A DNA stretch of 64,000 bases from Octopus sinensis (Eukaryota). Positions 10,690-40,545 of the stretch are shown one piece after another. The notes beneath the pieces were generated by a model. It was not told the origin of the DNA and ran no database searches. It saw only the letters and a list, made by a program, of their open reading frames with translations. The stretch lies in NCBI RefSeq assembly GCF_006345805.1, contig NC_043010.1, positions 60,698,001 to 60,762,000 of the forward strand, given 5' to 3'. A program made the translations under genes and the position numbers. Within the stretch, counting starts at the first letter, position 1. The number at the start of each line of letters is the position of its first letter.

Positions 10690-10967
10690 GTGTGTGTGTG
10701 TGTGGAGGACATAGAGTTGTAACTAGCACACACCAGCATCTGGCTAACACCTCACCTCCCACTACATACAGCAACTGTCACACTATTATATCAGCAGTTA
10801 CACAGGAACAGCAGCAGCAGCTGCAGTAACACAGGAACACTACTACAACAGCAGCAGTACCACTATAATACCACTACAGCAGCAGCAGCAGCAGTTGGAG
10901 TGGAACACTACAGCAGGATACATATCATCCATCACACACAACTACAGTGAAGGATTAAACAATGCTG
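10690..10967 (+). promoter_or_regulatory. Candidate non-coding leader exon / promoter module for gene B
   Basis: CAG/CTA-rich block ending GGATTAAACAATGCTG|GTAAGT followed by a (CT)n tract; paralogous blocks end at 27037 and 40488. The 5' boundary (TSS) cannot be determined from sequence. Confidence 0.55.
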
Positions 10968-11084
10968 GTAAGTCTCCCTCCCTCTCTCTCTCTCTCTCTT
11001 TATTATCTTTTCATATTCATTATAACATTTATATTATTTGTGTTTCTAATGACAGACAGGGTAAGGATAATATCTAAAATGTCT

Positions 11085-11220
11085 GCCATGTTGTATATAT
11101 ACAGGGACTGGGACAGTGGAGGATCGAGAGATCTAGCCATCACTTCCACCATTAACAACAACAACAATAGCTGCAGTAGTCATTGTATTACAATTACTTT
11201 GAACTGGATTACTTCTTTCA
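11085..11220 (+). repeat. Conserved non-coding block downstream of the leader donor, paralog at about 27500-27570
   Basis: GGGACTGGGACAGTG..GA.CGAGAGATCTAGCCATCACTTCCA versus GGGACTGGAACGGTG..AACCGAGAGATGTAATCATCACCTCCA. Confidence 0.6.
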
Positions 11221-11493
11221 ATGTTAGAATCACACAAGACTCCATACATATATATTGCTATGATATATTTTATATATAATAATGGTTTAATATATTCCAA
11301 ACTAGGTATCTATATATTTATTTTGCTATCAGAAAACATTTATTGAAAACCAATAAGACTGAGTTTCAATAATGTATGTCAGTATTGTTTATATCTCTGT
11401 CGGCATAATAATTCACTAATTAAATCTTAATCTTTCTGTTGCTTTTAATGAACTATCCGATCACTAATATTTCTATATAAGTATATAAATCTG

Positions 11494-11494
<1 letters not shown>

Positions 11495-11562
<68 letters not shown>

Positions 11563-11589
11563 CATACATACATACATATATATATATAT

Positions 11590-11620
<31 letters not shown>

Positions 11621-11640
11621 TATATATATATCTACTATAT
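11495..11640. repeat. (TA)n/(TAGA)n microsatellite
   Basis: Directly visible. Similar compound TA/CA/TG tracts at 25160-25570, 27130-27250, 43815-44030, 50160-50465, 57480-57710, 58200-58350, 59320-59710 and 62667-62840. Confidence 0.95.
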
Positions 11641-11782
11641 ATTTGTGAGAAGGGCAGACGTTGTCTCACAAGCAGTTCCGCAGGCAAAAGTGTTTGTAAA
11701 TGTGCTCGGATTGACCTGAAAATTTGTACACTTGTGTTAAAAGTGGTGGGGAGTTTGCATGGCAACATATATATACATATAA

Positions 11783-11820
<38 letters not shown>

Positions 11821-13989
11821 TTACAACCTGTAAAATATCCACTATGTATTCCTTTGTATATAATATACTGCAAATGTTTATTATGATTATTAATATTATT
11901 AGTGTTGTTGAGGTGGTAAGATTCAGAATCATTTGCACACTGGGTGAAATTCTTAGTGGCATTTCTCCTGGCCTTATTATCTAGGTTCAAATTCTGCTGT
12001 GGTTGACTTTGCCTTTCATCTTTTCAGGGTCAATAAATTAAGTACCAGTGAAACACTAGGGTTCAATGAATTGACTAGTCCCATCCTCTCAAATTTCAGG
12101 CCTTGTGTTTTAAGTATAAGGCATCATCATCATCATCATCTTCATCATTGTCATCGTCATCATCATTATTAGTGTGATTCGTTATAGTTTTTAGTGCAAG
12201 ATGTAAGCTGATGATATTGTCATGTGTTGTTAAAATATATTAACTCTGACTACAAGAGATGAATGTTGTAGATTTCTTCTTACAAACTAACATGCACCAC
12301 ATTATTAGAGTTTCTTATTTGTTGAATATAATATAATGGAAATAGTTTTTATGTATAAGAATTTCCTTGTATGTAAAGAGGAATTAAAATATTTTACAAT
12401 TAGTTTGATAAGGAAGAGATCTACTTATTTCTTGAAGATAATTATATTTTTCCATCAACATTCACTCCACCATTTTATGATTCCCATCTTTAGTTTAGTG
12501 CAAATTATCCTTGTGAACTCCAATTGTCTCTTTTGGCATGGATTCTATGGCTTGATGCCCTTCTTAGCACCAAGCACTTTATAAAGTGTCCTGGGTATCC
12601 TTTATGTGGCACCAACATGGGTGCTTTTCACATGGTTTGTTAAGTTGTAATAATTATTGTCAATATAATTCAGTATTTTGTGTGCAGTTTATTTAGAAAT
12701 ATTCCATGAAGATTTTGGTTAAATTTCCAAAATATCCAATCAACATTTCCCAAATGTTTAGCTTTCTAAACTTAAATTCCTCTAATTAGATTTTCCCCAC
12801 TCAATGCTATTTAATAACTTCATTATAATTTATTTTTCATTAAGCTCTATTTTAATCTCATAGAACTGTTTTTATTCTTTAATTATTAATCCTAAATGAC
12901 ATCCTACCAGCCAACATCAGACCTCCTTATATTGTTACTAACTTCAGTCTGAACCTCAAATTTACTTAGTTTATTTTTCATATGAAATAGTTACCAGCCA
13001 CTTAGGTAAACCTTCTGTGAATTACATGGGTGTACGAAGTGGGTGTTGACATCCAATTTCTCTAATGGATATGAACCACTGACCACTCTGCTGGTTGTCT
13101 GGTACTTTACCATCTGATCCATGCAGTCATTCAACACCAACCAGAGTCAGGGGGTAAATATTAACCATTGTGGACCACTTCAACCCATTGGACTGGACCC
13201 TGATTGTGTTTCTTCCATCTCCTTCCCTTTGTGAGCTCCTGAGTTAGATCCTAAACTCACCAAACCTTTCAATCTATTTCTGTCTATGATGGTCTACTCA
13301 ACTTCTTGAAGCATTCACTGGTTTCTCTGTTTCCCTAAAATGTCAGGCTGTTAGAAACATTAATTCATGTCCAGAGTAAAATGTATGGTGACGTGTATAT
13401 ATGTATTCATTTCCATTTGTATAAACAGTCTATATTTTTTAATGTCTATTCAGACTTATATTTCAGTAAATTGTCTGAATTTGTTTGTAATTTATTAAGA
13501 TCTCTGTTCAAACACATAATGTTAAAAATATGTTTTCTTTATATATTTGTTTATATATTTCCACTATCATCATCATTATTATTATCATCACCATCATTTA
13601 ATGTCCGTTTTTCATGCTGAAATGGGTGGGACAGTTTGACAGGAGCTGTCAGCTGGAGGGTTTCTCAGGTTTCAATTGTCTCTCTTGGCATGCTTTCTAC
13701 AGCTAGTTGCCCTTCCTAATGCCAACCACTTCAGAAACTGTACCTGGTGCTTTGTACGTAGCACTGGCACAAGTGCTTTTACATAGCACGGGTACTTTTA
13801 TGTGGCACTGCTCGGCATGGGTGCTTTTAGGTAGCAGGCCTCAGCATAGGCACTTGAATATGGCACTAGCAGAGGTGCTTTTACATGGGTCGGGCACTGG
13901 TTCGAGTGCTCTTTTGTGGAACCAGTGCAAGTTCTTTTAGTGACACCAGCACCCACAAAACTATAAGAACAAGCTCTTAGCTAAGAGAG

Positions 13990-15350
13990 GGACATAGAGG
14001 ACATGCTGTATGTATGGATGGCCACAGTTTTACTTAACTTGGCACATCTTCTCAAGCACAGCAAACTGTCAGAAGTCTTTGTCCCTTGTCACCTTCTCTG
14101 TGAAGCCCAGTAACTGAAGATCTTTTCTCACTAGTTTGTCCTATTTTTTTCCTGGGTCTAGCCCTTTCATAGGTTCCCTCCATCCCTCTACAATTAGAGA
14201 TCAGCACTTCTTTACGCATCTGTCCACATCCAAACGCATCACATGACCAAACCAGTGCAGTCTTCTTCCTTGCACACAACATCTGATACACCTTATACCC
14301 AGTTTTCCTCTTAAATCATTTACACTGTGTCATGCATGCACACTGACATTACCCATCCAGAGGTGCATGCTGGCTTCAATTCTTTCAAGCCTTTGCATGT
14401 CCTCTGTAACCATAGCCCATGTTTCACTGCCATGTGGCATAGCTGTATGTACACAGGCATCATCTGTCTTTCACTCTTAGGTTGAAGCCCTTTGTTACCA
14501 ACAAAGGTAGAAGCTCTCTGAACTTTGCTCAGCCTGTTCTTATTCTAGCAACTACACTTTCAGAACTTCCACTTCCATTGCTAATTTGGTCATTTGGGTA
14601 ATGGAAGCTATCTACTACTTCTAAGGATACCCACCAGACATTTCAGGAAGTTTGTTCTCTGTACATTCTTAGTGCTTATTGTACCTGCACATCTGCCACA
14701 TACAGACTACTTTCTCAGTCAACCTTCCCATAATGCCACTGCACTTCTCATATGTCCATAGCCTTCACTGGGTACACCTTATATCAAGCAGGGCCATCTG
14801 CCTGAAGGGATTTAAGTTTTGTTTGTGTTCCTACTAACTAGGACTTTTGTCTTAGTTAAATTAACTTCAAAGCCCTTAGATTCCAGACTTTGCTTCCACA
14901 CCTGAAATTTCTTCTCTAGTTCAGGTAGTGATTCAGCTTTAAGAACAAGCTCATCAATATAGAGGAGCTCCCATGGGCAGCCAGTCTGAAATTCCTCTAT
15001 TATGGCCGGGAGGATTGTGATAAACTAGAGGGGTCTGAGAACCAATCCTTGGTAAACTCCCACTGGTACACTAAATTCATTGCTACTCTCATTGCCAACC
15101 TTCACCTAACTGACAGCATCCATGTACATGGCTTCTATCACTCTCACCAACCGCTCATCTATCCCTAACTTCTGCATTGTCCACCAGATGAGCAAATGGA
15201 GGACTCTGTCAAAGGCTTTCTCCAGGTCTACAAACCAAATACAAAGATTTATTCTTGGCTAAATGCTTCTCTTACAGTTGCCCTATTAGGAAGATAGCAT
15301 CAGTAGTGTTTCTCCCTGGCACAAAACCAAACTGCATTTCATCCAGGCTA
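13990..15350 (-). mobile_element. Degenerate RTE-clade LINE fragment (RT and C-terminal region)
   Basis: Minus-strand translation shows QFGFVPGRNTTDAIF, a DLEKAFDR-like motif and WELLY(I)DELVL (YADD motif degenerate); multiple stops and frameshifts. Confidence 0.8.
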
Positions 15351-16581
15351 ACCCTCTTCCTATATATAGACATCTGTTATCTGGCGAAGGATATGCCAAC
15401 CTCTCTAATGTTGGTGCCATGATAAGATATACCCAGAACTCTCTGTAAATATACTATAAGGTGTTAAGAATGTAGATATAGTAACCATGCCAAATGAATA
15501 AAAAATGGTAGATGAGCAGAGGGTGAGTGTACAAACTGTAAGGGGAAAAACAGTTAGAGAATACCATATGATGGCTGGAATATAGGGTTAGTGTAGCAAG
15601 AGGGTAGTGAGATAAAGAAAGGATAGAGTGGGGAGTAGGGTACCATAGTGGAGAGCAGGGTATGAAAGTAGAAAGACGATGCTGGGAAGGTGAGGAATGG
15701 TAGGTGGATGCAACAAGATCATCTCAGTCAACAGCACAATCTTTATCAGTCTGATTTCTACCATATTTGGCTGAAGGAACAACATTTTCTCCACTACAGC
15801 ATGTCACCAATTGTCACATGCTGTTGTCATCCCTTTTGAGAAGGTCAGCATCTGCAGGCAGATTCTCACCATTTCTTTTCCATGTATTTTAGGTCTTCCT
15901 TTTCCAATGGCACCATTCACATTGCACATTTCTAATTCCTGACAGTGTTTCATTTAGACAACCTGTTGGACAGAACTGCTAAATACTTCAATTTGTGTGT
16001 AAATTATAAACAAACACACATGCACACACACAATTGTAACTTGAGAACTTACAATTGTTTGTTCATCAACTGTCAATAGTAAAACTACAACAAAACATTA
16101 CAACTACTGGTTCGTTAAAACAAACCAAAGTAGAATCACCATATGAGTAGTTCAGGAGGATTGAATGAAATATGGCGTTTGAATATCTTTGACAAAACGA
16201 TATTGTGGTATTCACACCCGTATACTGTAATATACGCTTCACATATAGCCTACACTTTGAGACGGTTCCTTCGTCAGTGTGCAGGAGATAAATATGATTT
16301 TACCATATTCTGCCAGTACATGTCCTAGCAGTACAGTAGGGAAGCTACCATGGAAGGTTCAGATATTATTGGTCTTCACCATACCATGGTACCTGCTACA
16401 TATTATCTATTAAGCAACCTCATCGCAACCAAAAGAACTAACTGCTATCAGAACAGAAAAGATGACATATTTTAAATAATTCTGATGAATCTAAATGTAT
16501 ATATTTGGAGATGGAAATAATATTTACACAAGTCATTATACTTAGGTCTTATCATCTTTGAATTCTACATAAGCTTTTAAT

Positions 16582-16601
16582 ATCCTTCTTGTCTTTTGTA
16601 G
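16582..16601 (+). promoter_or_regulatory. 3' splice acceptor 38 nt upstream of the gene B start codon
   Basis: CCTTCTTGTCTTTTGTAG. Confidence 0.7.
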
Positions 16602-16639
16602 CAATTTCTCCTGCTGAAATGTGATGAAGAATTCCAGAC

Positions 16640-19039
16640 ATGACAGCATATATTGGTCTACTGTGTCTTCTACATTTACTGATCACCCTTGTACTGTCCA
16701 TAGATATTACATACCATGTCAAGGAAGAAGGCAGACCTCACACCTATATAGGAGACATTGCTGTTGACTCCAACTTATCACACCCTCTCACACATCAACA
16801 ACACACTCTCATTACATTTACACAACTACAAAGGACAGTCGAGAGTGGTTCTCACTTATTTAATGTCACCAACTCAGGAAAACTCTACACTACTCAGACA
16901 CTGGATGCTGAGTCTCTGTGTACATACAACAAGGAATGTTCTAGGATTGTTAAAGTAGCTGTAAGGAAAGAAGAAACATTTATGAAAATTTTAAGGATAA
17001 AAATATTAATAGAAGACATCAATGACCATTCTCCAGAGTTTCCTTATCAGAAAGTTGACATAGAATTTGTTGAAACTGAAGCAAAAGGTCTAACAAAAAC
17101 AATTCCAAATGCTATTGATGAAGATATTTCAATACAAAATTCTCAGATTACATACTTGATTAAGAAAAGTAGAAGAGAACCATTTTCTCTCTCTGTCACA
17201 AAGCGACATGATGGTGTCTATATTCCAGGACTGGTTCTAGAGGACAAATTAGACAGGGAAGTAAAAGACTCATATGAGTTGATCCTAGAAGCTAAAGATG
17301 GAGGCAACCCTCCCAACACAGCTACACTCAAGGTACACATATCTGTGACAGATGTCAATGATAATACACCTGTATTTTCACAGAAACTCTACAACATCTC
17401 TGTAAGTAATTCACATCAAAGACATTTACCAATTCTTACTTTAAAAGCCACAGATCAAGATTCTGGAGACAATGGAAAGATTTCTTACCATTTCAACCAT
17501 AAAACATCTCGAAATATCCAGAAATATTTTGTATTAGATAAGAAAACCGGAGATTTATTTTTACATGATAATTTTCAGGTTAGTAAAAAGCAGTCTATTA
17601 AATTATTTGTAGAAGCAAGAGATGGAGGAAAACCTCCCCTTAGTACTGTAACCAAAGTTCAGATTCATGTTGTTAACCATCAGAATACTGCTCCATTGAT
17701 AAATATAGATTTTGTATCTCCTTTAACAGAGAGCTCAGCAGCAGTTTCAGAAGCAAGTAAAATTGGTAGTTTTATAGCTTATGTTATGGTCACTGACAAT
17801 GATAGTGGACCTAATGGTGAGGTTATCTGTGATTTAAAACATGATAAGTTTAAACTTGCCAAAATAGATTCTAAAGAATATAAAATGATTGTTAAGGGTC
17901 ATCTTGACAGAGAAATAAGGGACCACTATAAAGTATCTATTGTGTGTCATGACATGGGGTCACCTCAACTAGAAAGTAAAAAATATTTCTCCGTCAAAGT
18001 AACTGATGTCAATGATGTAGAACCACATTTTACCAAAGAGACATTCCAATTCCTCACCTATGAAAACCAGAAAGTTGACTTCCCTATTGGCTTCATCAAT
18101 GCTACAGACCCGGATCTTGGAGATGGAGGCCAACTTACATATTCTATCATCAATGATAACAACAATGATAACATTCCTTTCCAACTGACAAAATATGGAT
18201 TTATTTCTACATCACAACCAATAGATCGAGAAATGAAAGACATCTATAAGTTCAAGGTTTTAGTGAAAGATAATGGAACACCTTCTCTCAATGACACTGC
18301 CAATATTGTTATTGAGATTCTAGATAAAAATGATAATGCTCCGTATTTTACGTTTCCTAATAATGACCCTTACAATCTCGATGTCCACTACCATCCACAC
18401 AGTAAGAAGGACATCACAATTCTGAGAGCATCTGACAAAGACACTGGAAACAATGCTTTCCTCACATATGGAATACTGAGATCCAATGATAAAAACCTGT
18501 TTACAGTGAACTCACACACTGGTGTGTTATCTTTCTCTCGCACAGTTTACCAAAATGATGCAGGAACATATGAGCTGCAGTTTATAGTGAAAGACGGTGG
18601 TACTCCAGTTCAATCAGCAACAACTGCTATCATACTAACACTGTTTGTTAGTAATGATACATCTCCAATGTTGACTGCTGTGCCATTCCAGTCTGGTCAC
18701 GACCTGAATATGACTTGGGTAATTATCATTGTAGCAGCAGCTGTAATACTATCTGTGGCTATTGTAGTGTCCATAACACTGTGTGTTTTCAGATGTATTA
18801 ATCACACAAATAACTCACCCACAACAGCAGAGAATCCCAACTTTCTCTCTCAGACTGAGATGAGACAATTACTGTATCAGACTAACAATCCTGTTGCAAT
18901 AACGAGAAATGCAGAAGAGATATTTAACCGAAATCTTCAGACAATAAAATCTAAAAGTCAGTTTTTTCTGGAGATGGAACAGACACCAGATGAGTGGAAA
19001 TTCTCAACAACACAAAGGAGACTTCCACCTGTGCCTCAG
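16640..19039 (+). CDS. PCDH: Protocadherin gene B, intact large coding exon (800 codons: signal peptide, EC1-EC6, TM, juxtamembrane)
   Basis: 804-aa ORF with six cadherin repeats and a TM segment; donor CAG|GTAAAT after 19039, so the last four residues (VNIF) are intron read-through. With exons 2 and 3 the product is 874 aa. Confidence 0.97.
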
Positions 19040-19405
19040 GTAAATATATTTTGAAACAATTCAATTTTTTAATAATAAATTTCTTTCACATTTTGAAAAT
19101 GATCTTTCAAATGTAAGGATGTATAATTTTTTTGTTTGTAATTTAGTAAAAATTATATAATTAGATTCTCCAGAATAAATGGAATTGTCTTCATTTAACT
19201 AGTAAATGTTTTCTTGTTGTTTCTCTACTTATTTTATACTAGCAAATTCTTCAAATATACTGTTAATTTGATTCTACCATCCAAAATTTACTTTTTTTAT
19301 AAAAGTATCCTTTTATTATCTCTTATTAAGAACACTCTAGAATATAGATATAAATGCTACTTCCATTTTGTATTGTTTCACCCTGCTTTGTTTTCTAATC
19401 ACCAG

Positions 19406-19550
19406 AGATGTGATTCAATCCATAGTCAAGAACGTCGTACCAGTTCCATCATGTCTTACAACAGTGACACCTTAACATCCCAAAAGGACAGAGAAGCTAG
19501 CAAGAGTAATGGCAAGACTAAACCATATGATGAGATACCTGCAGAACCAG
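19406..19550 (+). CDS. PCDH: Gene B cytoplasmic exon 2
   Basis: CACCAG acceptor, CAG|GTAACT donor, 145 nt, phase 0 to 1, in frame. Confidence 0.87.
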
Positions 19551-19714
19551 GTAACTTTTATCAAAACATAACATATAAATGTAATTGCCTTTATTACTGT
19601 AGGACAATATATAATGTTATGCTTAGTGTAATATAAGATCAATGTTTCTATCTTTATATATTGGAGTTGTTATATTGAAATGTAATTTGTGTTTGTATAT
19701 TTGATATTTTGCAG

Positions 19715-19794
19715 AATATACCAATGACAATCCAGTTGCAGCCACAATACTAAAGGGACAACAAATACAAGATACCTATCTACAGCCAACATAG
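19715..19794 (+). CDS. PCDH: Gene B terminal coding exon (...DTYLQPT*)
   Basis: TTTTGCAG acceptor, 80 nt, phase-1 entry, TAG at 19792-19794. Confidence 0.85.
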
Positions 19795-20158: not shown

Positions 20159-20340
20159 TAATGAAATAATTACTGTATTAGACTAACAGCCCTGTTGCAA
20201 TAACCATAAATGCAGAAGAGATATTTAACCAAAATCTTCAGACATTAAAATCTAAAAGCCAGTTTTATATGGAGATGAAGTAAACACCAGAGGAATGGAA
20301 ATTCTCAACATCCCAAATCCTACCACCAACACCAGTAAGT
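20159..20340 (+). pseudogene. Relic 3' end of a protocadherin large exon (decapitated fourth gene)
   Basis: Aligns with 18861-19045 (e.g. CCTGTTGCAATAAC..AAATGCAGAAGAGATATTTAACC.AAATCTTCAGACA.TAAAATCTAAAAG.CAGTTTT); two in-frame TAA codons; ends CCAACACCA|GTAAGT. No EC or TM sequence upstream. Confidence 0.85.
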
Positions 20341-24441: not shown

Positions 24442-25409
24442 TCCCTGCACTTCTGTTTTAGCTCTAATTCTAATTTTTTTAATCATTTCTATTCACACGT
24501 CTCCTCCAGCCTCTGAGAATTCACACAGGAGGAAACAAATCTACCCCAGTGGATTACTATTGACCCTGTCCTGGTCATCCATGGCCAGTAATATCAAACA
24601 GTAGAAGTTAAAAGATCAAGGCTTCGTCCAGTTAATCAATATGGCAAGGTATTAACATGTCAAAAATGTCAAAGGATTACAACAGCTTCAACATTGTCGA
24701 GTACCATTTTAACACTGAGATTAGTAAACTATATCTGCATGAGTCCACCATTCCATCAGTCCTTGGCTCCAACATGATTGTACCACTACAACAATAACAA
24801 CATAAATAATGATAATAATGTGAAGCGTTTCATTTGGAAATTACCATTGCTGTCAGCTGTCGCTTCTATTGATACTGTTAAACGCAGTCTACTCAGTCAC
24901 CGACCAGTCCACCCCTAATATGATGACAACAGCAACAACATCATCATCACTATCATCTGATATTGTTTGGAACTTTTATATCCCAGGCATCTACAACTCA
25001 TACTTTGCCATTTCTGGATTTACTACAACATCATTCCACTTCTATTTAGCCATTTCTGGATCACTACAAACATGGATACCTACAGCTCTGACACCTACCA
25101 CGCTCAGGTATTCAATGCTTGTATCATTCAACAATGCATTGCGAAATACATGCTTATATATATATATATCTACATATACATATATGTATGTATATATAAA
25201 TATACATGTACGTACACACACACACACTCACACTCATATATACATTCATATATATAACCTTAAATTAAAAATCACAAATCTTGCAATGACAGCCACCTTA
25301 CTGTAATTTCAAGATTTGTGGTTTTTAATTTAAGATTATCTTTACTCTGAGTAGCAGTTTTTTTGTGATGTTTTTGCAGCTTCAATAAAAACAAAGTATA
25401 TATATATAT

Positions 25410-26579: not shown

Positions 26580-27037
26580 ATTATTCACGCTGGTTGCCCC
26601 ACCTTTGTCCCTTACCAGCCATTCATGAGACTGTACAACACTCCACATGGAGCAGATGTTGCGTCTGACTGACTGACAGGCTGGCTGGTTGCCTGGTTGG
26701 CTGGCTGGTTGGCTAACTGACTGACAACACTGGTCTGTCAGTACAGAGAGACACTGTCACATTACTACAACAGCAGCACTTAACACTGTCACACTGCTAC
26801 AAGAATAATAAGCGTTACTACAACAACATTTGTTACACGGAAACACTACTACAGCAGCAATTACACAGGAGCACCACTACTGCTACTACATCAACAGCAG
26901 CAGCAGTAATAACTCAGGAGTAGCATCACCATTACTACATCGACAGCAGCAGCAATTACTCAGGAACACCACCACTACCACCGCCACTACATCAATAGAA
27001 TCCATGCCTCTACAACAACAGGGGATTAAACTGTAAG
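26580..27037 (+). promoter_or_regulatory. Candidate promoter and non-coding leader exon for gene C
   Basis: GC-richer (CTGG/TTGG)-repeat segment, then a CAG/CTA block sharing ACTGTCACA, TTACAC(A/G)G(G/A)A(A/G)CAC and GGATTAAAC motifs with 10690-10967; donor AAG|GTCAGT followed by CTCCCTC as in the gene B module. Confidence 0.55.
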
Positions 27038-27396: not shown

Positions 27397-27482
<86 letters not shown>

Positions 27483-27495
27483 TCTCTCTCTCTGT
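27385..27495. repeat. (CT)n microsatellite
   Basis: Directly visible; others at 37038-37080, 40502-40540 and 47266-47280. Confidence 0.95.
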
Positions 27496-28640
27496 TGTGT
27501 ATAGTTATATATATGGGGACTGGAACGGTGTATAACCGAGAGATGTAATCATCACCTCCATTATGAACGACATCATCCACAATGAATCAGTGATGGAGCC
27601 TCTATGATGTTGTTCAACTTGCTAGGAATGGCAACCAAATCACCGTCAATTTACACCTTATCATTTGATAAAATGATGAAAACATTGCATAATGTAGTCC
27701 AAGGTGGATAATGCACATAAATAATAGGTACTTATAATTAGGTGGCTTTGATTATGCGCTTGCTCAGTGAGGGTTGTCCTGAGGCCAAACACCAACAGCA
27801 CCAGCAATCGTTGTATTATGACATCTTGAAGGAAGGCATCATATTCCTATAACAACAACTACACAACACTCCTACATTAATTACAGTTTGGATATTTAAT
27901 TGGATATATAATGTCTCATTAATTAATGTCTTCTTTATGGCTATTTTTAACAAAATTTCTTAATTGTTAGTCAATAGTGATTGATCTGTAGAGATATTGT
28001 TTATAACCCCAGGTCAGCTGCAACTGGACAGTGCTGTGATCAAAGACATTCCAACTATAGCCATCACTTTGTTTATTTAAGCACTCTATCTCAGCCTGGT
28101 TTAGCCATTGTATTCTTCTTTTCAAAGTGCTAGGCCATCAGTTGAAGAACCTTTGGCTGCTATTTCTAGCAGATTCAATGACTACATAGAGACTTTTTTG
28201 TCAGGATGTATGTCAGAGGGATTGTGTTTGTATGTGTGTATGTGTGTGTGTGTGTGTGCATGCACGTATGTGTGTGTGTGTGTGCGCATGTGTGTGTGTG
28301 TGCATGTTTGCATGAGATAAATTTGTGTGTGTATGTATGTGTGCATGTGAGAGAGAGAGAGAGAGAAAAGTAAATCTGTGTATGGGTATGAGAGTGGTAA
28401 ATGGTGTGTGAAGTAAATTTATGTATTTGTTTATGTGAGGTAAGTTGTATGTGTGTGTTTGTGTAAGGAAAATAGAATTTCCAAACCGTATTGTGTCTAA
28501 AAGCCAAAGCAATGTTGTTCCTCAGGGATGCTGTATCTGCCATTCTGTAATTAAAGCTCCACAACATTACTAGGTTGGTCCTTGTATAATTCTCTACAAC
28601 TATTGTTGCTATTGTTAGTGTTGTACAGCGTTAGGATAGA

Positions 28641-28965: not shown

Positions 28966-29317
28966 TATTTTTAAGGGCCTCCGGGTCGGTGGCATGTAAA
29001 AAGCACCATCCAACCGTGGTTGTTTGCCAGCCTCGTCTGGCACGTAAAAAGTACCCACTACACTCATGGAGTGGTTGGCATTAGGAAGGACATCCAGCCG
29101 TAGAAACATTGCCAGATCAGACTGGGCCTGGTGCAGCCTTCTGGCTTCCCAGACCCCAGTTGCACCGTCCAACCATGCCAGCAAGGAAAGCGGACGCTAA
29201 ACGATGATGATGATGTTAGGATAGATATAACTTGGTACATGCTGTTAGTGTACCCCTTGTTATACGTTGACAGTATACACCTTGTTTTATAGTTTTACAA
29301 TGACAGTATACACTACG

Positions 29318-29470: not shown

Positions 29471-29983
29471 ATCCATGTGGCAGTAGCTGAAGTACAACAC
29501 ATTGACACATTCCTCTTGACTCCGTGTTCTATATGTTGCTTGTCAGGCCCTACATGCAAACATAATCTATATCTTACCCTCATACATACACACACACACA
29601 CACACATATCACTGTTGTTGTCATCATCATCATCATCATCGTTTAACATCTGTTTTCCATGCTGGCATGACTTGGATGGTATGAGAGGAACTGATAGCCA
29701 GAGAGATACCCAGGCTCAATTGTTTGTTTTGGCATGGTGTCTATGGCTGGATGTCCTTCCTAATGCCAACTGTTTACAGAATGTGTTGGGTGCTCCATAT
29801 GTGGCACTGGCACGAGTTCTTTTTACAGGGTGGTGCCAGCACAAGTTCTTTTTCATGGTTCTTTTTACAGAGTGCTAACATGAACGTGTGTGTGTGTGTC
29901 TGTGTGTCTGTGTACTATAATACAAATTATTGTCTTCTTTCTTGGTGCCCTTCATGCACTTAAAGAAGTCTCTATGATCAACA

Positions 29984-30001
29984 TGTATTTTTCATTTGTA
30001 G
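29984..30001 (+). promoter_or_regulatory. 3' splice acceptor 35 nt upstream of the gene C start codon
   Basis: TATTTTTCATTTGTAG. Confidence 0.7.
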
Positions 30002-30036
30002 GAAACCTCTTATCTGGACAATGGTGAAAACTTCTG

Positions 30037-32441
30037 ATGATGACTGGATACATTACCTTTCTTGTGTGTCTTCTATATTTACTGATCACCCTTGTACTGT
30101 CCATAGATATTACATACCATGTCAAGGAAGAAGGCAGACCTCACACCTATATAGGAGACATTGCTGTTGACTCCAACTTATCACACCCTCTCACACATCA
30201 ACAACACACTCTCATTACATTTACACAACTACAAAGGACAGTCGAGAGTGGTTCTCATTTATTTAATGTCACCAACTCAGGAAAACTATACACTACTCAG
30301 ACACTGGATGCTGAAACTCTATGTACATACAACAAGGAATGTTCCAGAATAGTTAAAGTAGCAGTGAGGAAAGGAAAAACGTTTATGAAAATTCTTAAAG
30401 TTAAAATAATTATAGTAGACATCAATGACCATGCTCCCAAGTTTCCAGGAAATCAGTTCCATCTGGAATTTGATGAAAATGATGGAGTTGGAACTAAGAA
30501 ATCCCTTCCAAACTCTATCGACAAAGATGTTAGTGTTCAGAATTCAAATATTAGATACCAGCTGAATAAGAACATTGATGGTGTTTTCTCATTGATAACA
30601 TCAAACTTATATGGCAATATATTCACACCTGAAATAGTTTTAGAAAAGAAGTTAGACCGAGAAACAAAAGCTAGCCATATGCTAGAGTTAATAGCAAAAG
30701 ATGGAGGTTCCCCACCAAAATATGACACCTTGGAAATTCTTATACAATTAACAGACGTTAATGATAATAGACCAATATTTTCACAGAAAATGTACAATGT
30801 CTCTGTAACAAATTCACATAAAACATCATCTCCAATATTGACTTTATCAGCAACTGATATGGATTCAGGACAAAATGCTAAGATTTCATTCTTATTTAAT
30901 CAACAAACATCAAATGAAGCAAAGAAGCATTTCACCTTAAATAAAATCACTGGAGACATTTTCCTAAAGCAAAAATTTAGCTATGATAACAAACAGGTGT
31001 ATAATTTATTTGTTGAAGCAAGAGATATGGGAAGTCCATCTTTGAGTTCCATAACAAAGATACAAGTAAATGTAATTAATACTCAAAATACTGCTCCATT
31101 AATTAATATAGATTTTGTATCTCCTTTATCAGAGAGCTCAGCAGCACTTTCAGAAGACAGTGAAGTAGATAGTTTTATAGCTTATGTTATGGTCACTGAC
31201 ACTGATAGTGGACCTAATGGTGAGGTTATCTGTGATTTAAAACATGATAATTTAAACTTGCCAAAATAGATTCTAAAGAATATAAAATGATTGTTAAGGG
31301 CCATCTTGACAGAGAAATAAGGGACCACTATAAAGTATCTATTGTGTGTCATGACATGGGGTCACCTCAACTAGAAAGTAAAAAATATTTCTCTGTCAAA
31401 GTAACTGATGTCAATGATGTAGAACCACATTTTACCAAAGAGACATTCCAATTCCTCACCTATGAAAACCAGAAAGTTGACTTCCCTATTGGCTTCATCA
31501 ATGCTACAGACCCTGATCTTGGAGATGGAGGCCAACTTACATATTCTATCATCAATGATAACAACAATGATAACATTCCTTTCCAACTGACCAAATATGG
31601 ATTTATTTCTACATCACAACCAATAGATCGAGAAATGAAAGACATCTATAAGTTCAAGGTTTTAGTGAAAGATAATGGAACACCTTCTCTCAATGACACT
31701 GCCAATATTGTTATTGAGATTCTAGATAAAAATGATAATGCTCCGTATTTTACGTTTCCTAATAATGACCCTTACAATCTCGATGTCCACTACCATCCAC
31801 ACAGTAAGAAGGACATCACAATTCTGAAAGCATCTGACAAAGACACTGGAAACAATGCTTTCCTCACATATGGAATACTGAGATCCAATGATAAAAACCT
31901 GTTTACAGTGAACTCACACACTGGTGTGTTATCTTTCTCTCGCACAGTTTACCAAAATGATGCAGGAACATATGAGCTGCAGTTTATAGTGAAAGACGGT
32001 GGTACTCCAGTTCAATCAGCAACAACTGCTATCATACTAACACTGTTTGTTAGTAATGATACATCTCCAATGTTGACTGCTGTGCCATTCCAGTCTGGTC
32101 ACGACCTGAATATGACTTGGGTAATTATCATTGTAGCAGCAGCTGTAATACTATCTGTGGCTATTGTAGTGTCCATAACACTGTGTGTTTTCAGATGTAT
32201 TAATCACACAAATAACTCACCCACAACAGCAGAGAATCCCAACTTTCTCTCTCAGACTGAGATGAGACAATTACTGTATCAGACTAACAATCCTGTTGCA
32301 ATAACGAGAAATGCAGAAGAGATATTTAACCGAAATCTTCAGACAATAAAATCTAAAAGTCAGTTTTATCCGGAGATGGAACAGATACCTAATGAATGGA
32401 AATTCTCAACAACACCCCGGAGACTTCCACCAGTTCCACAG
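30037..32441 (+). CDS. PCDH: Protocadherin gene C, large coding exon with a 1-nt frameshift at about 31250
   Basis: ORFs 30037-31269 and 31287-32501 are two frames of one exon. CATGATAATTT here versus CATGATAAATTT (A) and CATGATAAGTTT (B); restoring one base gives 802 codons. Donor CAG|GTAAGT after 32441. Confidence 0.95.
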
Positions 32442-32549
32442 GTAAGTGATAAATTAGTTAAAGCTTTTTTTTTTCTACTTTATATTTGTCTCATGAATTG
32501 AGTGTCTCTGAATCTGTAGAAAAGGTAATATACCACTCTTATTTACGAT

Positions 32550-32858: not shown

Positions 32859-35410
32859 AATTTAATTTAATTTAATGTTTTGGCTCAAAAAGCAAAAGTG
32901 AGGCTATGTAGAGGGACAGGGAGGGTGTTCATACAAAGAGTTCAGGCCATTTCTGGTCAAGAGAGACTTTGAACCGAGCAGTCGTCAGCATCTTCACTAT
33001 CTCGTCCGGCAGCTTATTCCACGGATCCGCAACCCAAACGGAGAAAGCCCCTCTCCTTTGATCGAGATGAAATCGTCGTAGATAGAGCTTTTCGCTCTGG
33101 AGCAGGAGTGAAGAACAGCTCTTTCGAGAGGTTACACTTTCTGCTTATGATGTTGTGAGCGAGAATGAGATCACCACAGCGGCGGCGTTTTTCAAGAGAA
33201 TAAAGGTCGAGTGTCTTCAGCCTTTCTTCATAAGACAAATGCTTGAGACCAAGAACCATGCGGGTAGCCAGCTTCTGGACTCTTTCGAGATGATGTGTCT
33301 TTGAGGAGATAGGGAGAAGAGGCTTGAATCCCGTACTCCAACATGGGTCTCACCAGCATGACATAGAGCGGTAGGAATATGGCTGCTGTGAGCATTCCGA
33401 ATGACCGTCGAATCAAAAACAGAACTCCACGTGCTTTGTTGGCAGCATGGATGCATTGGGCCGAAGGCGAAAAGGAAGAATCCACCAAGATACCCAGGTC
33501 CTTTACCTGGTCGGTCCTCTCCAGCAGCAGACGACCCAGCTCGAAATCAAGTTGAGTTGAAGGAGAGGAGCCAACAGGCAGATGACAGCACTTTGACACG
33601 TTCAGACACGGGTTCCATTCATTTGACCATCTCCAAACTTGGTGGAGGTATCAACGAAGATCATCTATATCACTGCAAGGAGCAACCAGTTTGACATCAT
33701 CGGCAAATAGAAGGGTGTGTTGCGTGAGGTCATCGGGTAAGTCATTGATGAAGACTGAAAACAATAACGGCCCAAGCACTGAACCTTGAGGCACGCCACT
33801 GCCCGCACTGGAGACGTCGGACAGCAAGCCATTAACTTGGACTTGGAAGGAGCGATCTGAGAGGAAGGCACCAACCCATCGTACAATATCCGGATGGAAA
33901 CTATGTGCTTGAAGCTTGACAAGTAATAGGCGGTGGTTAACCAAGTCAAAAGCTTTGGCAAAGTCCAATAAAACGATGTCAACAGCATCACCATCATCCA
34001 GGATACGCATCACCAATTCTTCCATTACCAGTAAGTTGGTCAAGCATGATCTCTTCGGCACAAAGCTGTGTTGGGAATCAGAGATAGAGGCTGTGTTTAG
34101 GAGGTGGAGCATCATACTTTTCTTAAGGATGGTTTCGAACATCTTGCTGATTATTGAAATAAGGGAAACTGGTCGGTAGTTAAGCAGGTCTTCGCGACTC
34201 CCTTTCTTGAAAATCGGGCAGATTATCGCTGTTCTCCAGTTCGCAGGTACAACACCCGTTGCCAATAACATATTGAATAGAAGTGTTAAAGGTTCACAGA
34301 TGACCAGAGCCAACGCTTTGATAACCTGTGGGTGTATGCCGTCAGAGCCATGACCCTTGTTGACATCGAGGCCTTGAATAACGCGTTTGACTTTGTCACG
34401 AGTGATGACCAATCTAGGCATTGGAGGTACCGATCTATCAAATGGAGGGGGTTCACGACCATCATCTTGTTTGAAAATTGTCGAAAAAGCCTCGGCAAAT
34501 AACTGACTCTGTTGATAAGGGTCCTCAATCGATATGCCTGTTGAGTCTACCAACGTTGCAATTTGGTTGTTCAAGCGGGAATTCTGTTAGACATGGGCAA
34601 AGAAGCTTTTGGATAGTGACTGGCATTTGCCATGATTTTGTATTCATAACTGAAGCGTTCTTCCTTTACAATTTTCACGGCTCGGTCTCGTCGAGTTTTG
34701 TACACCTCAAAAGCTGCAGTCGAATCCAGATTTTTTAATTCAGCCCAAGCAATATCTCTGAGTCGAAGTTCTCGTTTAACCTTCTTTGTCACCCAGAGCT
34801 TGTGTTTCTTCTTCTTAGGAAGCCCAACGGGAACTGCTTGGTCAGTCAACCAGATTACATGCTTTGAGGGACGACCATAGTTCGTCAACTGAGGACATCG
34901 TCATCAGGGATCGCCAGTCCAGAAGCGCTGAAGCCTCGGTTAGAATTTCAAGATTGATTGCAGAGAAGACTCTACGTGGCAGCGAAGTAGTCGTGGGCAT
35001 AGAAAAAGTTGTATGTATGTCGAACTTCAGGATCGCGTGATCACTCTTGGCAAGAGGGGCATACACAGATAAGCCTGACACTGATCTTGGATAGCGGGAG
35101 AATACCAGATCCAGCATAGATGGCTGCTGCCCAGACCGATGCCTTGTTGGAGATTCAACATGTTGCGATAGAAAACAAGCTTCAGCCATGTCAAGAAGGG
35201 CCTGGCCGAACCGGGAAGAGGATGTACAAATTGATGTGGGCCAGTCGATCGTGGGAGCGTTGAAGTCTCCTAATATCAAACATTCATGAGAAGATGAAAC
35301 AAATCTTATCACTTCAAGTAAATGAGCATCGTCCTGGAGGTCAGCAAGAGGAAGACATAAAGGATTGAACAAAATGGAAAAGGTTGCTGTGGGACCCACA
35401 AGGCTCACCA
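32859..35410 (-). mobile_element. 5'-truncated CR1/L2-group LINE in intron 1 of gene C (APE endonuclease remnant, RT, C-terminal domain)
   Basis: ORF pieces with ILGDFNAP, LDLVFS, SDH (endonuclease); NYRPVSL, DFAKAFD, GVPQGSVLGPLLF, FADD (RT); YEERLKTLDLYSLEKRRRCGDLI (CR1-type); short (ATTAA)n tail at 32859-32876. Several frameshifts; no TSD found. Confidence 0.92.
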
Positions 35411-36825
35411 CTATTTATAGTGAAAAATAGCAATACTGTGGTTCAGTCACCTACAACTGTTTAAAATGCTTTTTATGTTGTTTTTATCAAAAGTGTTTTT
35501 CTCATTTATGTAACAAAGTCCTATTTCATATTTCACTAACACAATTTACCAACTCATTGAATTATCTTAACATTAGTTAATAATAATGTTGAACTTTACT
35601 AAATACATGGTAATAATACTGAACTGTGATTGAAAAAAGGTAATAATGTTGAACTAAGCTCAATATAAAGAAATAATGTTGCCTCCCAAAATTCCTCAAA
35701 TTCACTACTCTTTATGAGTGGCCGATGAAGCCATTCCTCTTCAAGATTCTTTTTCTATTCAATTTTCTTTCTATTTATGTTTTATTCTGAGTTTTTGATT
35801 TTCATTGATGTCTTAATTTAGATGATTTACTGATGTGTTCTGTCCTCTCTTTTAACCTTTTCTGTTTATAGTAATAAACCTGAGCATTGTATACAATAAG
35901 TTCGTTTTCTTTTATCTTAGCCTTCTCCATCTTGTCAAGGCTTTTGTTTCTTTGTTTCAAACTCGTTTGGTCATCTTTTATAATTCCATTCACGTCTAAG
36001 ATACTTTTTGAAGTGACAGACTCCAAACATTGAACTTCTACATAATTTTTTATGAAATTAGTTGAATCAGCTGAGTCTTTGACCCACATAAATTGTTGTG
36101 TGTAAGGGCAGTTGGAGAGGGTCTCTGTCAGCAACCATCATAATAAACCTGTGTATAACTCTAGCCATTTCTTTATTATTCTGTTGAACGACCTGGGTCT
36201 GAAACGAGACTTTTTCTCTTCTAACAGCAACTGAACTTAGAAAGATATTAAGAAATTCTCTTCTAAAAACAATTGATTTAAACAATTTCATTTGTGAAGA
36301 GAATATAAGCCTTGTTTGAATTAATCGCTAATTGTGTTTCACAAACGTTTTAGTGACATCTACTAGAAATGTAATCTGCCAGGAATAGGGATCAAATCTT
36401 ATATTAGTTGGGGTTACATCATATCTTCTATGGGCTGTAAGCCTAGGCAACTGGAGTCTGTGGTTCAAATCTAACATGGATTACACATACTATGTTTGTT
36501 ACATCATCAAATGCATCTGTAAATTGTAAGTTATATAAATAATAGTGTTTTGCATCGAATGCACTTGTCATATGAATGGCTGTGCGTTGACAGCTTTTTA
36601 TATGTCATACTTATGGTTTTGTGAATTGCATCTAACAAAAGGCTAATGTTTACAGCTATTTGAGTTGAAGACTTTGTTTAAGTGGGCCATGGACCATCCA
36701 GTGACCACTTAACATTGCAAATAACCTTCATGATATAATATTGCTGTCATCATCATCGTTCTATTTAAACAAAATGTTGATGTAATCACTAAATTATATT
36801 GTTATATGTTGATGTTATTTAACAG

Positions 36826-36988
36826 ACATATGGTGGGGAGAAGATGAGGTCTTCCTATGAACACATCAACCGTGACTGTGCTAAAGTTAACAGCTACATG
36901 AATGATTCTGGATTCACAAGGAGTAATAAAGAACTTATTAAAAACAAGGAACATCTGAAAGACTATGAAGATGTTGAAGGAACATCAG
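36826..36988 (+). CDS. PCDH: Gene C cytoplasmic exon 2 (TYGGEKMRSS...DYEDVEGTSG)
   Basis: Acceptor TTATTTAACAG, donor CAG|GTAATT; 163 nt open in phase 0 to 1, the same phase pattern as genes A/B. Confidence 0.72.
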
Positions 36989-37033
36989 GTAATTATGACT
37001 ACCTTGTTGGAAACTAAATCTAACTTATAACTA

Positions 37034-37081
<48 letters not shown>

Positions 37082-39056
37082 CTCAATTTCTCTTTCTCTC
37101 CCTCTCTATCTTTAACACACACACACACACACACACTCACAAAGAACTCGATTATATCTGAATAAGGAAAGAACATCTTTGGGTTTTATAACATTAGAGA
37201 TATCCTTTCAGGGTCACCTAAGATACTGAACAGTGTAACAAGGAAAATTTTTTTAATTCCCTTTTTGTGTCTTTTTCAATAAATTGTTAAATATGTTGTA
37301 AACATATAAACTTGGGTGTTATAGTCAGTTTGTGTCAATAAAATTTCTGTTATGGCTTCATTTTCCAAAAATGTATGCAATGGGAGATGACACTGACCCT
37401 TAAATATAGTTAATTTCCAGAACTAGAGGAGACCAGCAAAGGTTGGGAGCAAAATTATCCATTTGATAAATTCTTTTTTTTTTTTTCTGTCTAAAATATA
37501 AGATACCCTGATCTTTCTTCCTGATATTCCAACGTGTCTGAGTTGAAGAATTATCTTATTTCTAAATAACACACCATTTCTCATGTAATTCATGATCTGA
37601 TGTTGCAGCATTCTAAACAAAACAGTGAAGATGAAGATGAGGAGCAACTTGATAAAAGATAAGCCACCAAAACGTCAGAACATCTTCAGTGAAGAGACAA
37701 CAATTATAATGTTGCCGTGTTGCCCTACTAACCCTGTTGTCATTAGTTCAAACCTTGCTACAACTAACATTACGTTGTCCCCTTGAGCAAGACACCTGGC
37801 TCTACTTATTCCAAATTGCTTGGCATTCACTACAGTGAATTAATTAGCAGTTGCTAGGAGATTCAGCTCTGAAAACCATCCAACCATGAAAGAACATAAA
37901 AAAAACATGAAAGTAAAAACTAAAAAAGGATCATCTATCAATCATCCCTTGTGTTTTTTTTTTCTGTGGTTTTCTTAATATTTTTGTTTCATCTCCAATG
38001 GTTACAATGGAATAGTTTTAATAAATTAAATCCTTAGAAATATATATTCATTCCATGTACTAATGCAATAGAGTTTCATTGGTTGAACTATATTGATTAA
38101 AGGTATGTATTAGTGATTGATTAGCACTATTCATATCAAAGTTTACACTTAAATGATGTTTCTCTGTGCAACCATTCAACCGTGAAGTTTGTAGCAGGAT
38201 GGTGTGTCACCACAGAGTTATCTCCCTTGGTTAACTTGGGCCCCATAATAGTTGAGTATATATACACACATGTGTATGTGTATGGGGAACACAACGCTCG
38301 CTTTACCACTTCCTCTCTCTCACTCCTTCCTACTGCATGATTTTGGACACATGCACACACACACATATTTATATAAACAAGTATGTTAAAAACACTACAC
38401 TTGTTATTATATTAGATGTTGTTAATTGCATGTTCCCATCCTGTGTCAACTAATTCACTGACCGTGCAACTTTGCGGTATTTATCTTTAGATTACAAAAC
38501 TTATCCATTTTTAAACATCAAGGCCCTTGTTGTCACCCCTCCACCACCACCACCATCATTATCTTATTACTACAATCAGTATGACCGTTCCCTGGGGGTG
38601 AAATGTTCTTTGTAGAAATGTTGACATAATCCTCAGGTGCAGACATGACTGTGTGCTTAAAAAGCATGCTTTGCAACCACGGGCCAACCAATGCCTTGTG
38701 AGGAGATTTGGTAGGCAGAAACTGTGTGGAAATCCATTATGTTTGCACATGTGTGCAGGTGTGTTTTTGTCCCCTCTTCCCACTGCTTGACGACCAGTGT
38801 TGGTTTGTTTACATCCCTGTGATTTAGCTATTCAGCAAAAAAAAAACAACAGAATAAGTACCAGATTTTATAAATAAAGAGTGGGATTGATTTCTTCAAC
38901 TAAACCATTCAAAGCACTGCTCCAGCATGGTCATAACGTGATGATTGAAACAAGTTAAAAAAAAACAAGATAAAGATAATCCAATCAAGTGAAATAACAT
39001 TCAATAAAAAAATGATTGATCTGTCTTTGATCCATGTTTCTTCTCTGATTTTCCAG

Positions 39057-39139
39057 AAATCAATTTCACCTCAACTGTTTCTCCAGCACCACAGAATCAT
39101 CAAGAACAAGAACAACAAGCATATCTGGAACCAGTCTAA
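39057..39139 (+). CDS. PCDH: Gene C terminal coding exon (EINFTSTV...QQAYLEPV*)
   Basis: Long pyrimidine tract ending TTTTCCAG; phase-1 entry gives 27 residues then TAA; the end QQAYLEPV* parallels QDTYLQPT* of A/B. Confidence 0.75.
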
Positions 39140-40239
39140 TGTGGGACAGTGTATGTCATATTGTATGGCAGACAGTGTCCCACTTGAAGACTTGTTGAAC
39201 ATTGGTACAGCCACATACGGACAGAAAGCATTCATACCCCTCAACACCACCTATATACCACTTCTCAATATCAGTATTCATACTGAGTATGTAATAACTT
39301 TAGTTCATATATCTGTTTGTAGTGGGGAGTGGGCCAGGTGGGGATAACCAATTACAAAAAAAAAAAACAATAGCTTCTAACATTAAAGACAAAATCCACA
39401 CCAGATAAGGTAAAACAAGTCCTTATTGATATCAATATTAAGCATTTTGCCAGAATCTTAAAATCATATGGTTTGTTTCACTCACTGGAATTATCCAATC
39501 AAACCTGTCCTTATTTAGGGTCACAGGTTTAGACAACTCCTGACCAATCCTTCCAGTTTTGTTTATAAATATCAAATCATTCAGAGATGTTACTTCAGTT
39601 TCCAATTTGTTTTTCACATTTGCAAGTCTGTTGTTGCACATCACATCAAAATATATTTAGATATTCATTAACATTAAAACTATTTAGTCTGATTACTTGA
39701 AATTAATGATTTTAATCAGAAGGTACTGTATATTGAATTTTGGTTACATAATTGACTAGGGGTAAGTTTAATATAAAATTATTTGAAGAGCAATTTCAGA
39801 AATGTAAAAATAATTAGAATTCGTAAAAGAAAATTCCTGAAAATAGATAGAAAAATATAAAACCAAGAAGATAAATGTTCATATAGAATATTGTTTTGTG
39901 TTCCTTACTCTAAGAAGCTTTTGGTTCTGAAAGTTCATTACTCCTAGAGCAGAAACACTAATCTCACCAAGAAACTGTAGCAGACTATGGGCTACGATCT
40001 CCTCTTTTCTATAATTTTAATATTTAGGACTCTTGAGTAACTGGGTTCTCATATTTTTAAGACTTTTATTTATTTCTAAAGAGTTAACAACTGCTGTATG
40101 GGTATTGACCACAATAAAAAAAAAATACACAGGTATATAAACACACTAGCAGCAACAACAACACACACACACACACATTTACTTACTTCAAAATATTATT
40201 GGACACACACATGTACACAGAGAAAGTGTCAAAATCACT

Positions 40240-40488
40240 CCCACACATATTTTCACTTGAACTTATGCATGAACACCAGCTGTTACAATGGGACACAACT
40301 GCAATGGCAGTTGCACTGAAACACTACAACACCAACAGTGACACTGGAACACCACTGAAACAGCGCTATTGGACTTTAACAGCATTAGATAAACAGTAAG
40401 AGTGGGACACTCCTACATGAACAGTTACACTGCAACATTATACATGTTGATACATGTTACTATGAAAACAATGGATTACACAATGGTG
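40240..40488 (+). promoter_or_regulatory. Third leader-exon-like module; no downstream coding exon in the window
   Basis: GGATTACACAATGGTG|GTAAGA followed by (CT)n, versus GGATTAAACAATGCTG|GTAAGT in the gene B module; also CAGTAAGAGTGGGACACT versus CAGTTGGAGTGGAACACT. Confidence 0.5.
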
Positions 40489-40499
40489 GTAAGAATATA

Positions 40500-40545
<46 letters not shown>

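Follow-up and report, generated by a model that had tools for sequence, protein, structure and literature searches.

Evidence for a conserved non-coding leader exon ahead of each gene in a tandem protocadherin array of Octopus sinensis

Where do the genes of an octopus protocadherin array begin, and does each of them have a beginning of its own? The question is raised by a stretch of 64,000 nucleotides of Octopus sinensis DNA (the window; chromosome CM016872.1, about 60,698,001-60,762,000), which belongs to a head-to-tail array of genes annotated as "protocadherin beta-15-like". A first-pass annotation made from the letters of this DNA had proposed that each gene starts at a non-coding leader lying kilobases upstream of its coding exon. 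The analysis described here makes it likely that each gene has a conserved, private non-coding first exon and an intron in its 5' untranslated region (5'UTR), which leads to an acceptor just before the ATG, probably together with a promoter of its own. The non-coding first exon is well supported by sequence anatomy, paralogy, cross-genus conservation and junctions in annotated gene models; that the leader has its own promoter is plausible on the same anatomy. The promoter, the transcription start, the frequency of read-through and the translational role discussed below are matters that we infer.

Cadherin domains are found in large plus-strand open reading frames (ORFs) at 6356-8038, 16640-19054 and 30037-31269/31287-32501. 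The ORF at 16640-19054 corresponds to the O. sinensis protein XP_029645453.1 ("protocadherin beta-15-like") at 100% identity, and mapping this protein back onto the window locates three genes, here called A, B and C, whose exons are listed in Table 1. In gene C the cytoplasmic exons belong to another sequence type than in genes A and B; the genes therefore have no constant exon in common.

The acceptor motif TTTGTAG, said in the first-pass annotation to stand 35-38 nt upstream of each ATG, is present at all three large exons, with AG-to-ATG spacings of 38, 38 and 35 nt, and the in-frame TGA predicted between acceptor and ATG is found in 3/3. The pattern TTTGTAG-N35-38-ATG has only these three matches in the window, where 1.6 are expected, so the bare count is not above chance; the telling point is that all three fall on the starts of cadherin ORFs. 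Genes A and B are 94% identical across the acceptor/ATG region, which means that the window supplies only about two independent cases, and because of this near-identity the sample was widened to 16 distinct genes of the subfamily, 12 from O. sinensis (five loci) and four from Argonauta hians (two loci). A YAG acceptor lies 35-38 nt upstream of the ATG in 15 of the 16 genes, and an in-frame TGA is likewise found in 15/16. This stop, usually a TGA TGA doublet, lies between acceptor and ATG and excludes the leader from the main ORF.

The leader modules themselves are paralogous CAG/CTA-rich blocks with a terminal GGATTA signature, a donor and a CT tract, and their proposed ends at 10967, 27037 and 40488 are confirmed. 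With a slash marking the splice site, leader 1 ends ...GGATTAAACAATGCTG/GTAAGT at 10967/10968 (CTG/GTAAGT), leader 2 ends ...GGATTAAACTGTAAG/GTCAGT at 27037/27038 (AAG/GTCAGT) and leader 3 ends ...GGATTACACAATGGTG/GTAAGA at 40488/40489 (GTG/GTAAGA), each followed by a CT tract; a canonical GT donor is also present in 12 further leader copies and in Argonauta. The terminal signature can be written GGATTA-N-AC(AATG).../GTAAGT followed by (CT)n, and the pattern GGATTAMAC-N2-8-GTMAG has three matches in the window against 0.00 expected. A profile hidden Markov model (nhmmer) built from leader 1 and three Argonauta orthologs, with leaders 2 and 3 left out, finds leader 2 (E=9.7e-16), leader 3 (E=1.8e-14) and an intron block at 27504-27568 (E=1.7e-4); over both strands of the 64-kb window it detects nothing else, and all three modules are on the plus strand. 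A motif-free scan, requiring a GTRAG donor with A/C-rich sequence before it and a pyrimidine run after it, returns only 10967 and 27032 in the 64 kb.

The leaders are richer in A (about 37%) and C (22-29%) than the window (32% and 19%), and leader types 1 and 2 have at most one ATG each. A 13-nt motif, TWACWCWGGARCA, occurs in two to three copies per leader (7/9 window matches fall in leaders, against 1.7 expected). The leaders of Argonauta carry the motif too, and it may serve as a binding site for a protein, at the DNA or the RNA level. GGATTA is the reverse complement of TAATCC, which we take to be the site of K50 homeodomain factors, as a lead only. An Rfam scan of the whole window gives no match.

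The placement of the modules is regular. At the O. sinensis loci (5 loci, about 15 intervals) there is exactly one module per intergenic interval, always on the plus strand, and the leader of gene A is found in the upstream flank, about 330 nt ahead of the window start. Poly(A) signals (ATTAAA or AATAAA) lie 160-400 nt past the stops, ahead of the conserved island described below; after the gene A stop, ATTAAA occurs at 10175, 10328 and 10405. Distances of about 0.7, 2.2 and 1.1 kb had been put forward between the last exon of each preceding gene and the next leader. The outer two hold (10010 to 10690 and 39139 to about 40270), while the 2.2-kb value is not confirmed: a search for cytoplasmic exons across 20.3-26.7 kb detects nothing significant, the nearest coding sequence being a large-exon remnant at 20161-20334. 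This remnant is probably what is left of a gene deleted between B and C and, if so, the loss would explain why leader 2 sits 7 kb past the gene B stop. Two pairs of conserved intron blocks had been proposed as well; the first pair is borne out, and the second is real and offset from its proposed place (112-236 versus 11408-11530, 76% identity).

Junctions in public gene models connect leader and acceptor. The RefSeq protein XP_029645448.2 (938 residues), a paralog about 45 kb upstream, has a C-terminal extension of 64 residues and ends ...TYLQPT + YYTGTAAAAAVTQEHYY...SEGLNNA + EISPAKV, followed by the stop. The first 57 residues of the extension come from translation of the leader module in a single frame, and the last seven, EISPAKV, are the codons right after the TTTGTAG acceptor, up to the TGA. 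A single GT-AG solution reproduces the protein (on its locus: 10001-12400, 12779-12923, 13088-13166, 13958-14127 and 25287-25309), with a last intron of 11,159 nt (AACAATGCAG/GTAAGTCTCT joined to CTTTTGTAG/AAATTTCTCC). In it, the leader donor AATGCAG/GTAAGT is joined to the next large exon at TTTTGTAG/AAATTTC, which is the type of join foreseen as 10967/16602 in the window, seen here in the gene model of a paralog and not in reads. This junction and the conservation in Argonauta support the earlier proposal that a non-coding leader kilobases upstream is spliced to an acceptor just before the ATG. Within XP_029645448.2 the leader is an internal exon, entered at the AG of ATCAGCAG/TTACAC (the counterpart in leader 1 is CAGCAG/TTACAC, 10797/10798); the donor spliced to it, ACATA/GTAGAT, is weak and splits the stop codon of the preceding gene.

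A second cross-gene model comes from Octopus vulgaris, whose annotation drew on Iso-Seq, RNA-seq and PASA (PMC10700109). In CAI9733455.1 the normal donor of the penultimate exon (exon 3), GAACCAG/GTAAC, is spliced to the acceptor of the next gene, TCTTTTATAG/CAAATTCTCC; the model omits the last exon and the leader and ends at the TGA (exon structure solved uniquely). Such skipping is expected if the leader is a first exon, which would have no obligatory acceptor. Splice junctions between adjacent same-strand genes occur, at model level, in two forms: last coding exon to next leader to next acceptor (O. sinensis) and penultimate exon to next acceptor (O. vulgaris). The conserved TGA terminates the chimeric ORF in both, so the downstream protein is not the thing that is re-paired.

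An exact-protein look-up of the window gene matched only the genome record, and a search of cluster representatives for other proteins with a translated leader (XP_029645448.2 region 872-938) found none. A search with the N-terminal 150 residues returned one Logan contig, from SRR8281666 (3370 nt), which is a full-length protocadherin mRNA of another cephalopod with about 50% N-terminal identity; its 323-nt 5'UTR holds a stretch rich in GCAGCAGCAG, a hint that leaders of the CAG-rich kind might extend beyond this sub-family. The RefSeq model XP_036365293.1, a 1794-residue fusion of two adjacent protocadherins linked by small exons outside the leader and by an AG after TGA TGA, is taken as a model-building artifact, or a rare isoform at best. 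One of its linker pieces resembles window positions 13263-13364, inside the 5'UTR intron of gene B; this segment could mark an alternative 5' exon, though a model artifact is likely.

Module, donor and acceptor are all kept in Argonauta hians. The orthologous leaders lie 1.2-1.4 kb past the preceding stop and end ...GGATTATACAACAATGCAA/GTAAGTCTCTC, with a CT tract, and the acceptors read T(T/C)TGTAG or TTTACAG, 38 nt before the ATG where measured. A sliding comparison with Argonauta reveals an island of about 600 nt (10561-11160) with 60-80% identity against a background of about 45%, which starts about 160-230 nt ahead of the CAG-rich part, runs through the leader and takes in some 190 nt of the intron. 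The same comparison shows no conserved block directly upstream of the acceptor, where homology begins 23 nt before the ATG. Together with the poly(A) signals ahead of the island, this is what a promoter plus exon 1 would be expected to show. Two further blocks in the gene B 5'UTR intron, 14399-14770 and 14928-15343, share 64-66% identity with the corresponding Argonauta introns and could be either an intronic regulatory element or a common old repeat.

The spliced 5'UTR of the main type (window 10962-10967 + 16602-16642, with equivalents at four other loci) contains three upstream ATGs in both Octopus and Argonauta. One lies 6 nt before the donor and opens an upstream ORF (uORF) of 14-15 codons, M(Q/L)xFLLLKCDEEFQT, that runs across the junction and whose TGA overlaps the main ATG (ATGA); the end of its peptide, KCDEEFQT, is identical in the two genera. 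The second is an ATG-TGA start-stop in the main frame (gene B 16619-16624, with a second TGA at 16625-16627), and the third opens a 47-codon out-of-frame overlapping uORF. Since the in-frame TGA coincides with the start-stop, it belongs to this conserved uORF cluster. Through these upstream ATGs, the leader probably also tunes translation.

Taken together, these elements suggest a four-exon transcription unit for each gene of the sub-array. Exon 1 would be a non-coding leader of at least 170 nt, with about 250 nt probable, carrying two to three TWACWCWGGARCA copies; it would lie 0.7-1.4 kb past the previous stop, within the island of about 600 nt that likely holds the gene's promoter. A 5'UTR intron of 2-11 kb would join it to the large exon at a YAG that precedes the ATG by 35-38 nt. 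The large exon would encode the signal peptide, cadherin repeats and transmembrane region, with two small private cytoplasmic exons after it. When the upstream poly(A) site is read through, upstream donors would take the same acceptor or the AG inside the leader, and the conserved in-frame TGA would then close the chimeric ORF.

Several observations weigh against this reading of the array. The junctions come from gene models (Gnomon, PASA/EVM predictions), and the sole model that uses a leader donor enters the leader through CAGCAG/TTACAC, which leaves first-exon status and a private promoter as likely readings. Most of the paralogous copies are recent duplicates of near-identical sequence, so that Argonauta and the three diverged leader types make up the independent evidence. 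Leader 3 is followed by no protocadherin large exon in the 23.5 kb to the window end; either it has a partner beyond the window, or the module is an orphan in decay where the sub-array ends. Finally, the leader profile and the motif-free scan find no module within 10 kb upstream of more distant protocadherins at one O. bimaculoides and one O. sinensis locus, which makes the module specific to the sub-family or places it farther off there.

These points give room to other explanations. The module might never be a first exon at all and might instead be an internal non-coding exon of long multi-gene read-through RNAs that start at a few upstream promoters, with the island acting as a splicing or processing element. 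The sole annotated use of a leader donor does enter the leader from the last exon of the preceding gene, through the stop-splitting donor; the module lies far nearer to the end of the previous gene than to its own large exon; the O. vulgaris model crosses gene borders too; and the two-gene fusion of 1794 residues exists in RefSeq. We nevertheless regard this as unlikely. Conservation reaches about 230 nt upstream of the internal acceptor, which itself has a poor pyrimidine tract and reads CAA rather than CAG in leader 2, and the donor within the stop codon is weak. A downstream ORF would scarcely be translated when a complete upstream ORF and a TGA come before it, so such RNAs cannot serve as the main mRNAs, and the O. 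vulgaris chimera leaves out the leader just as read-through chimeras typically leave out first exons. A module that is nothing more than functionless low-complexity, microsatellite-like or mobile-element-derived sequence, carried along by tandem duplication and bearing accidental splice motifs, is far less credible still, and only a slight chance is given to it. CAG, TG and CT microsatellites do lie within or beside the blocks, the leader region of one Argonauta locus has grown to more than 1 kb of CAG/CTA/CAA-rich sequence, and the leader RNA is predicted to fold no more stably than shuffled sequence (z = -0.5). Against this, the donor, GGATTA motif and CT tract have been kept even where the flanks of the copies can no longer be aligned, a second genus has the orthologous block, every gene has strictly one copy, always on the same strand, and a RefSeq model uses the donor.

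The first-pass annotation went further and proposed that any leader could splice to any downstream acceptor, which would decouple promoter choice from isoform. Free, regulated combination of this kind draws on leaders that are all non-coding, on acceptor contexts that are near-identical and on the fact that acceptors take non-cognate donors in gene models. It is very improbable, however: no leader-to-distant-acceptor junction occurs in any model examined, the cross-gene junctions that do occur come from upstream coding exons, such a splice would need three intervening exons to be skipped together with poly(A) read-through, and one leader per gene argues that cognate pairing is the selected state. 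This part of the earlier proposal is therefore not upheld, and the private first exon remains the preferred interpretation.

The architecture is conventional: it fits 5'UTR-intron genes combined with tandem-gene read-through chimeras. As in ordinary 5'UTR-intron genes, there is a GT donor on a non-coding exon, a pyrimidine-rich YAG near the ATG, an upstream in-frame stop and a conserved island resembling promoter plus exon 1. Unlike them, the octopus leader forms a paralogous family across a tandem array, repeats a 13-nt motif two to three times, has a fixed GGATTA..AATG../GTAAGT + (CT)n end, and stands far closer to the 3' end of the previous gene than to its own coding exon. Read-through chimeras reportedly skip, in the typical case, the last exon of the upstream gene and the first exon of the downstream one, as Akiva 2006 and Parra 2006 are said to have found. 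The O. vulgaris model, which goes from a penultimate exon to a downstream exon 2 between same-strand neighbors, is of this kind, and XP_029645448.2 is a second variant that takes in part of the downstream first exon. Such products of tandem genes are known as transcription-induced chimerism, conjoined genes or cis-SAGe (PMC2953495, PMC5704251). The octopus case differs from them in that it recurs within a paralogous array with near-identical acceptors and in that a TGA 7 codons past the acceptor truncates every chimera.

Vertebrate alpha and gamma protocadherins have variable first exons with individual promoters containing a conserved sequence element (CSE) and CTCF sites, joined to common constant exons (PMC4978886, PMC9068888). 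The octopus array resembles these clusters in its tandem large exons, each with the whole ectodomain and transmembrane region, in having one promoter-like conserved element per unit and in the homogenization of paralogs by gene conversion. It departs from them in that constant exons are replaced by private ones (9622-10010, 19406-19794 and 36826-39139) and in that the large exon is exon 2, with an acceptor ahead of its ATG and no conserved block directly upstream. A scan of the window for the CTCF consensus (up to two mismatches) gives two matches, none near the modules and at chance level; the test is weak, since the octopus CTCF motif may differ. Chelicerate Dscam and UGT1A-type 5' cassette clusters with alternative promoters (PMC4835542) offer another parallel, a gene family for neuronal recognition in which 5' units stand in tandem, each under a promoter of its own, as is probable here; those units share common downstream constant exons, whereas the octopus genes share none and their 5' unit is non-coding. 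In the published accounts, cephalopod protocadherins are multi-exonic genes multiplied by whole-gene duplication, and splicing to shared exons is absent. The literature search, with Albertin 2015 and Wang & Ragsdale 2017 outside it, found no account of a cephalopod protocadherin leader family, its motifs, uORFs or read-through chimeras; the gene layout is already implicit in public gene models.

A bolder idea can be built on these comparisons, and as a joint claim it is quite unlikely. The leader modules might play in the octopus the part that the promoter-choice element plays for vertebrate protocadherins, with TWACWCWGGARCA sites, GGATTA and (CT)n setting which protocadherins a neuron expresses; read-through and near-identical, promiscuous acceptors might amount to a cluster-wide splicing system; and the TGA "firewall" and the uORF set might keep its products harmless or regulated. 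If true, the promoter-choice part of this idea would mean that two protocadherin arrays which expanded independently had converged on a choice element for each unit.

Table 1. Positions of leader modules, protocadherin exons and related features in the window
Feature	Position	Strand	Details
Conserved block upstream of leader 1	10540-10719	+	60-80% identity with Argonauta; candidate proximal promoter of gene B
Leader exon 1 (for gene B)	10720-10967	+	A/C-rich, CAG/CTA-rich; two TWACWCWGGARCA copies (10798, 10827); 5' boundary putative
Start of gene B 5'UTR intron	10968-11160	+	CT tract 10973-10999; block kept in paralogs and Argonauta
Leader exon 2 (for gene C)	26750-27037	+	Three TWACWCWGGARCA copies (26861, 26910, 26956); alternative donor 27032/27033
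Intron block	27504-27568	+	Homologous to 11095-11158; pushed downstream by microsatellite insertions
Leader module 3 and CT tract	40270-40541	+	Donor 40488/40489; 8 ATGs; less A/C-rich; TWACWCWGGARCA at 40339 and 40425
Gene A exon 2	6311-8754	+	TTTGTAG 6311-6317; 38 nt 5'UTR; TGA TGA 6338-6343; ATG 6356; large cadherin exon
Gene A cytoplasmic exons 3, 4	9622-9766, 9931-10010	+	Stop TAG 10008-10010
Gene B exon 2	16595-19039	+	TTTGTAG 16595-16601; 5'UTR 16602-16639; TGA TGA 16622-16627; coding sequence 16640-19039; 100% identical to XP_029645453.1
Gene B exons 3, 4	19406-19550, 19715-19794	+	Stop included; boundaries solved exactly against protein
Large-exon tail remnant	20161-20334	+	Residues 741-799 (about 59 codons); 73% identity; just past gene B 3' region
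Gene C exon 2	29995-32441	+	TTTGTAG 29995-30001; 35 nt 5'UTR; TGA 30025-30027; ATG 30037
Gene C cytoplasmic exons 3, 4	36826-36988, 39057-39139	+	Stop TAA

The coding parts of genes A and C are not intact. The reading frame of gene A is broken by a frame shift near 7993, which the RefSeq model XP_036365297.1 (826 residues) spans with a pseudo-intron, and the frame of gene C meets a stop at 31267-31269 and resumes at 31287 (break near 31251-31287); either these are true pseudogenes or the breaks are indels of the (long-read) assembly. The large exon of gene C ends in a donor CCACAG/GTAAGT at 32441/32442. Compared as protein with the large exon of gene B (30037-32441 versus 16640-19039), it shows 68% identity over the first 408 residues and 97.5% over the remainder, and this mid-exon jump has the appearance of a sharp gene-conversion boundary.

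Mobile sequences are scattered through the window. LINE-like (long interspersed element) retroelement ORFs, with an Exo_endo_phos_2 endonuclease and an RVT_1 reverse transcriptase, occupy 33228-35411 on the minus strand, inside the gene C intron between the large exon and the first cytoplasmic exon. A dispersed repeat of about 150-220 nt, with 72-85% identity among copies in both orientations (371-638, 2237-2950, 11924-12119, 42905-43354, 44903-45100, 55609-55793 and 61081-61267), is probably a SINE-like (short interspersed element) sequence, and a second dispersed family is found at 3979-4177, 13578-13780, 29038-29229, 29621-29823 and 58342-58537.

Among invertebrates, octopus protocadherins offer the best-known parallel to the neuronal identity code of vertebrates, and the value of the leader modules for this family is practical (annotation and regulatory DNA) and comparative, not conceptual. 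Public models of these arrays include read-through chimeras and fused genes, which would distort gene counts and expression estimates, and a map of the leaders makes it easier to match 5' reads and single-cell tags with the correct paralog. The probable promoter and leader of each gene are located kilobases from its coding exon, beside the end of the previous gene, and this position guides work on the regulatory DNA of the array.

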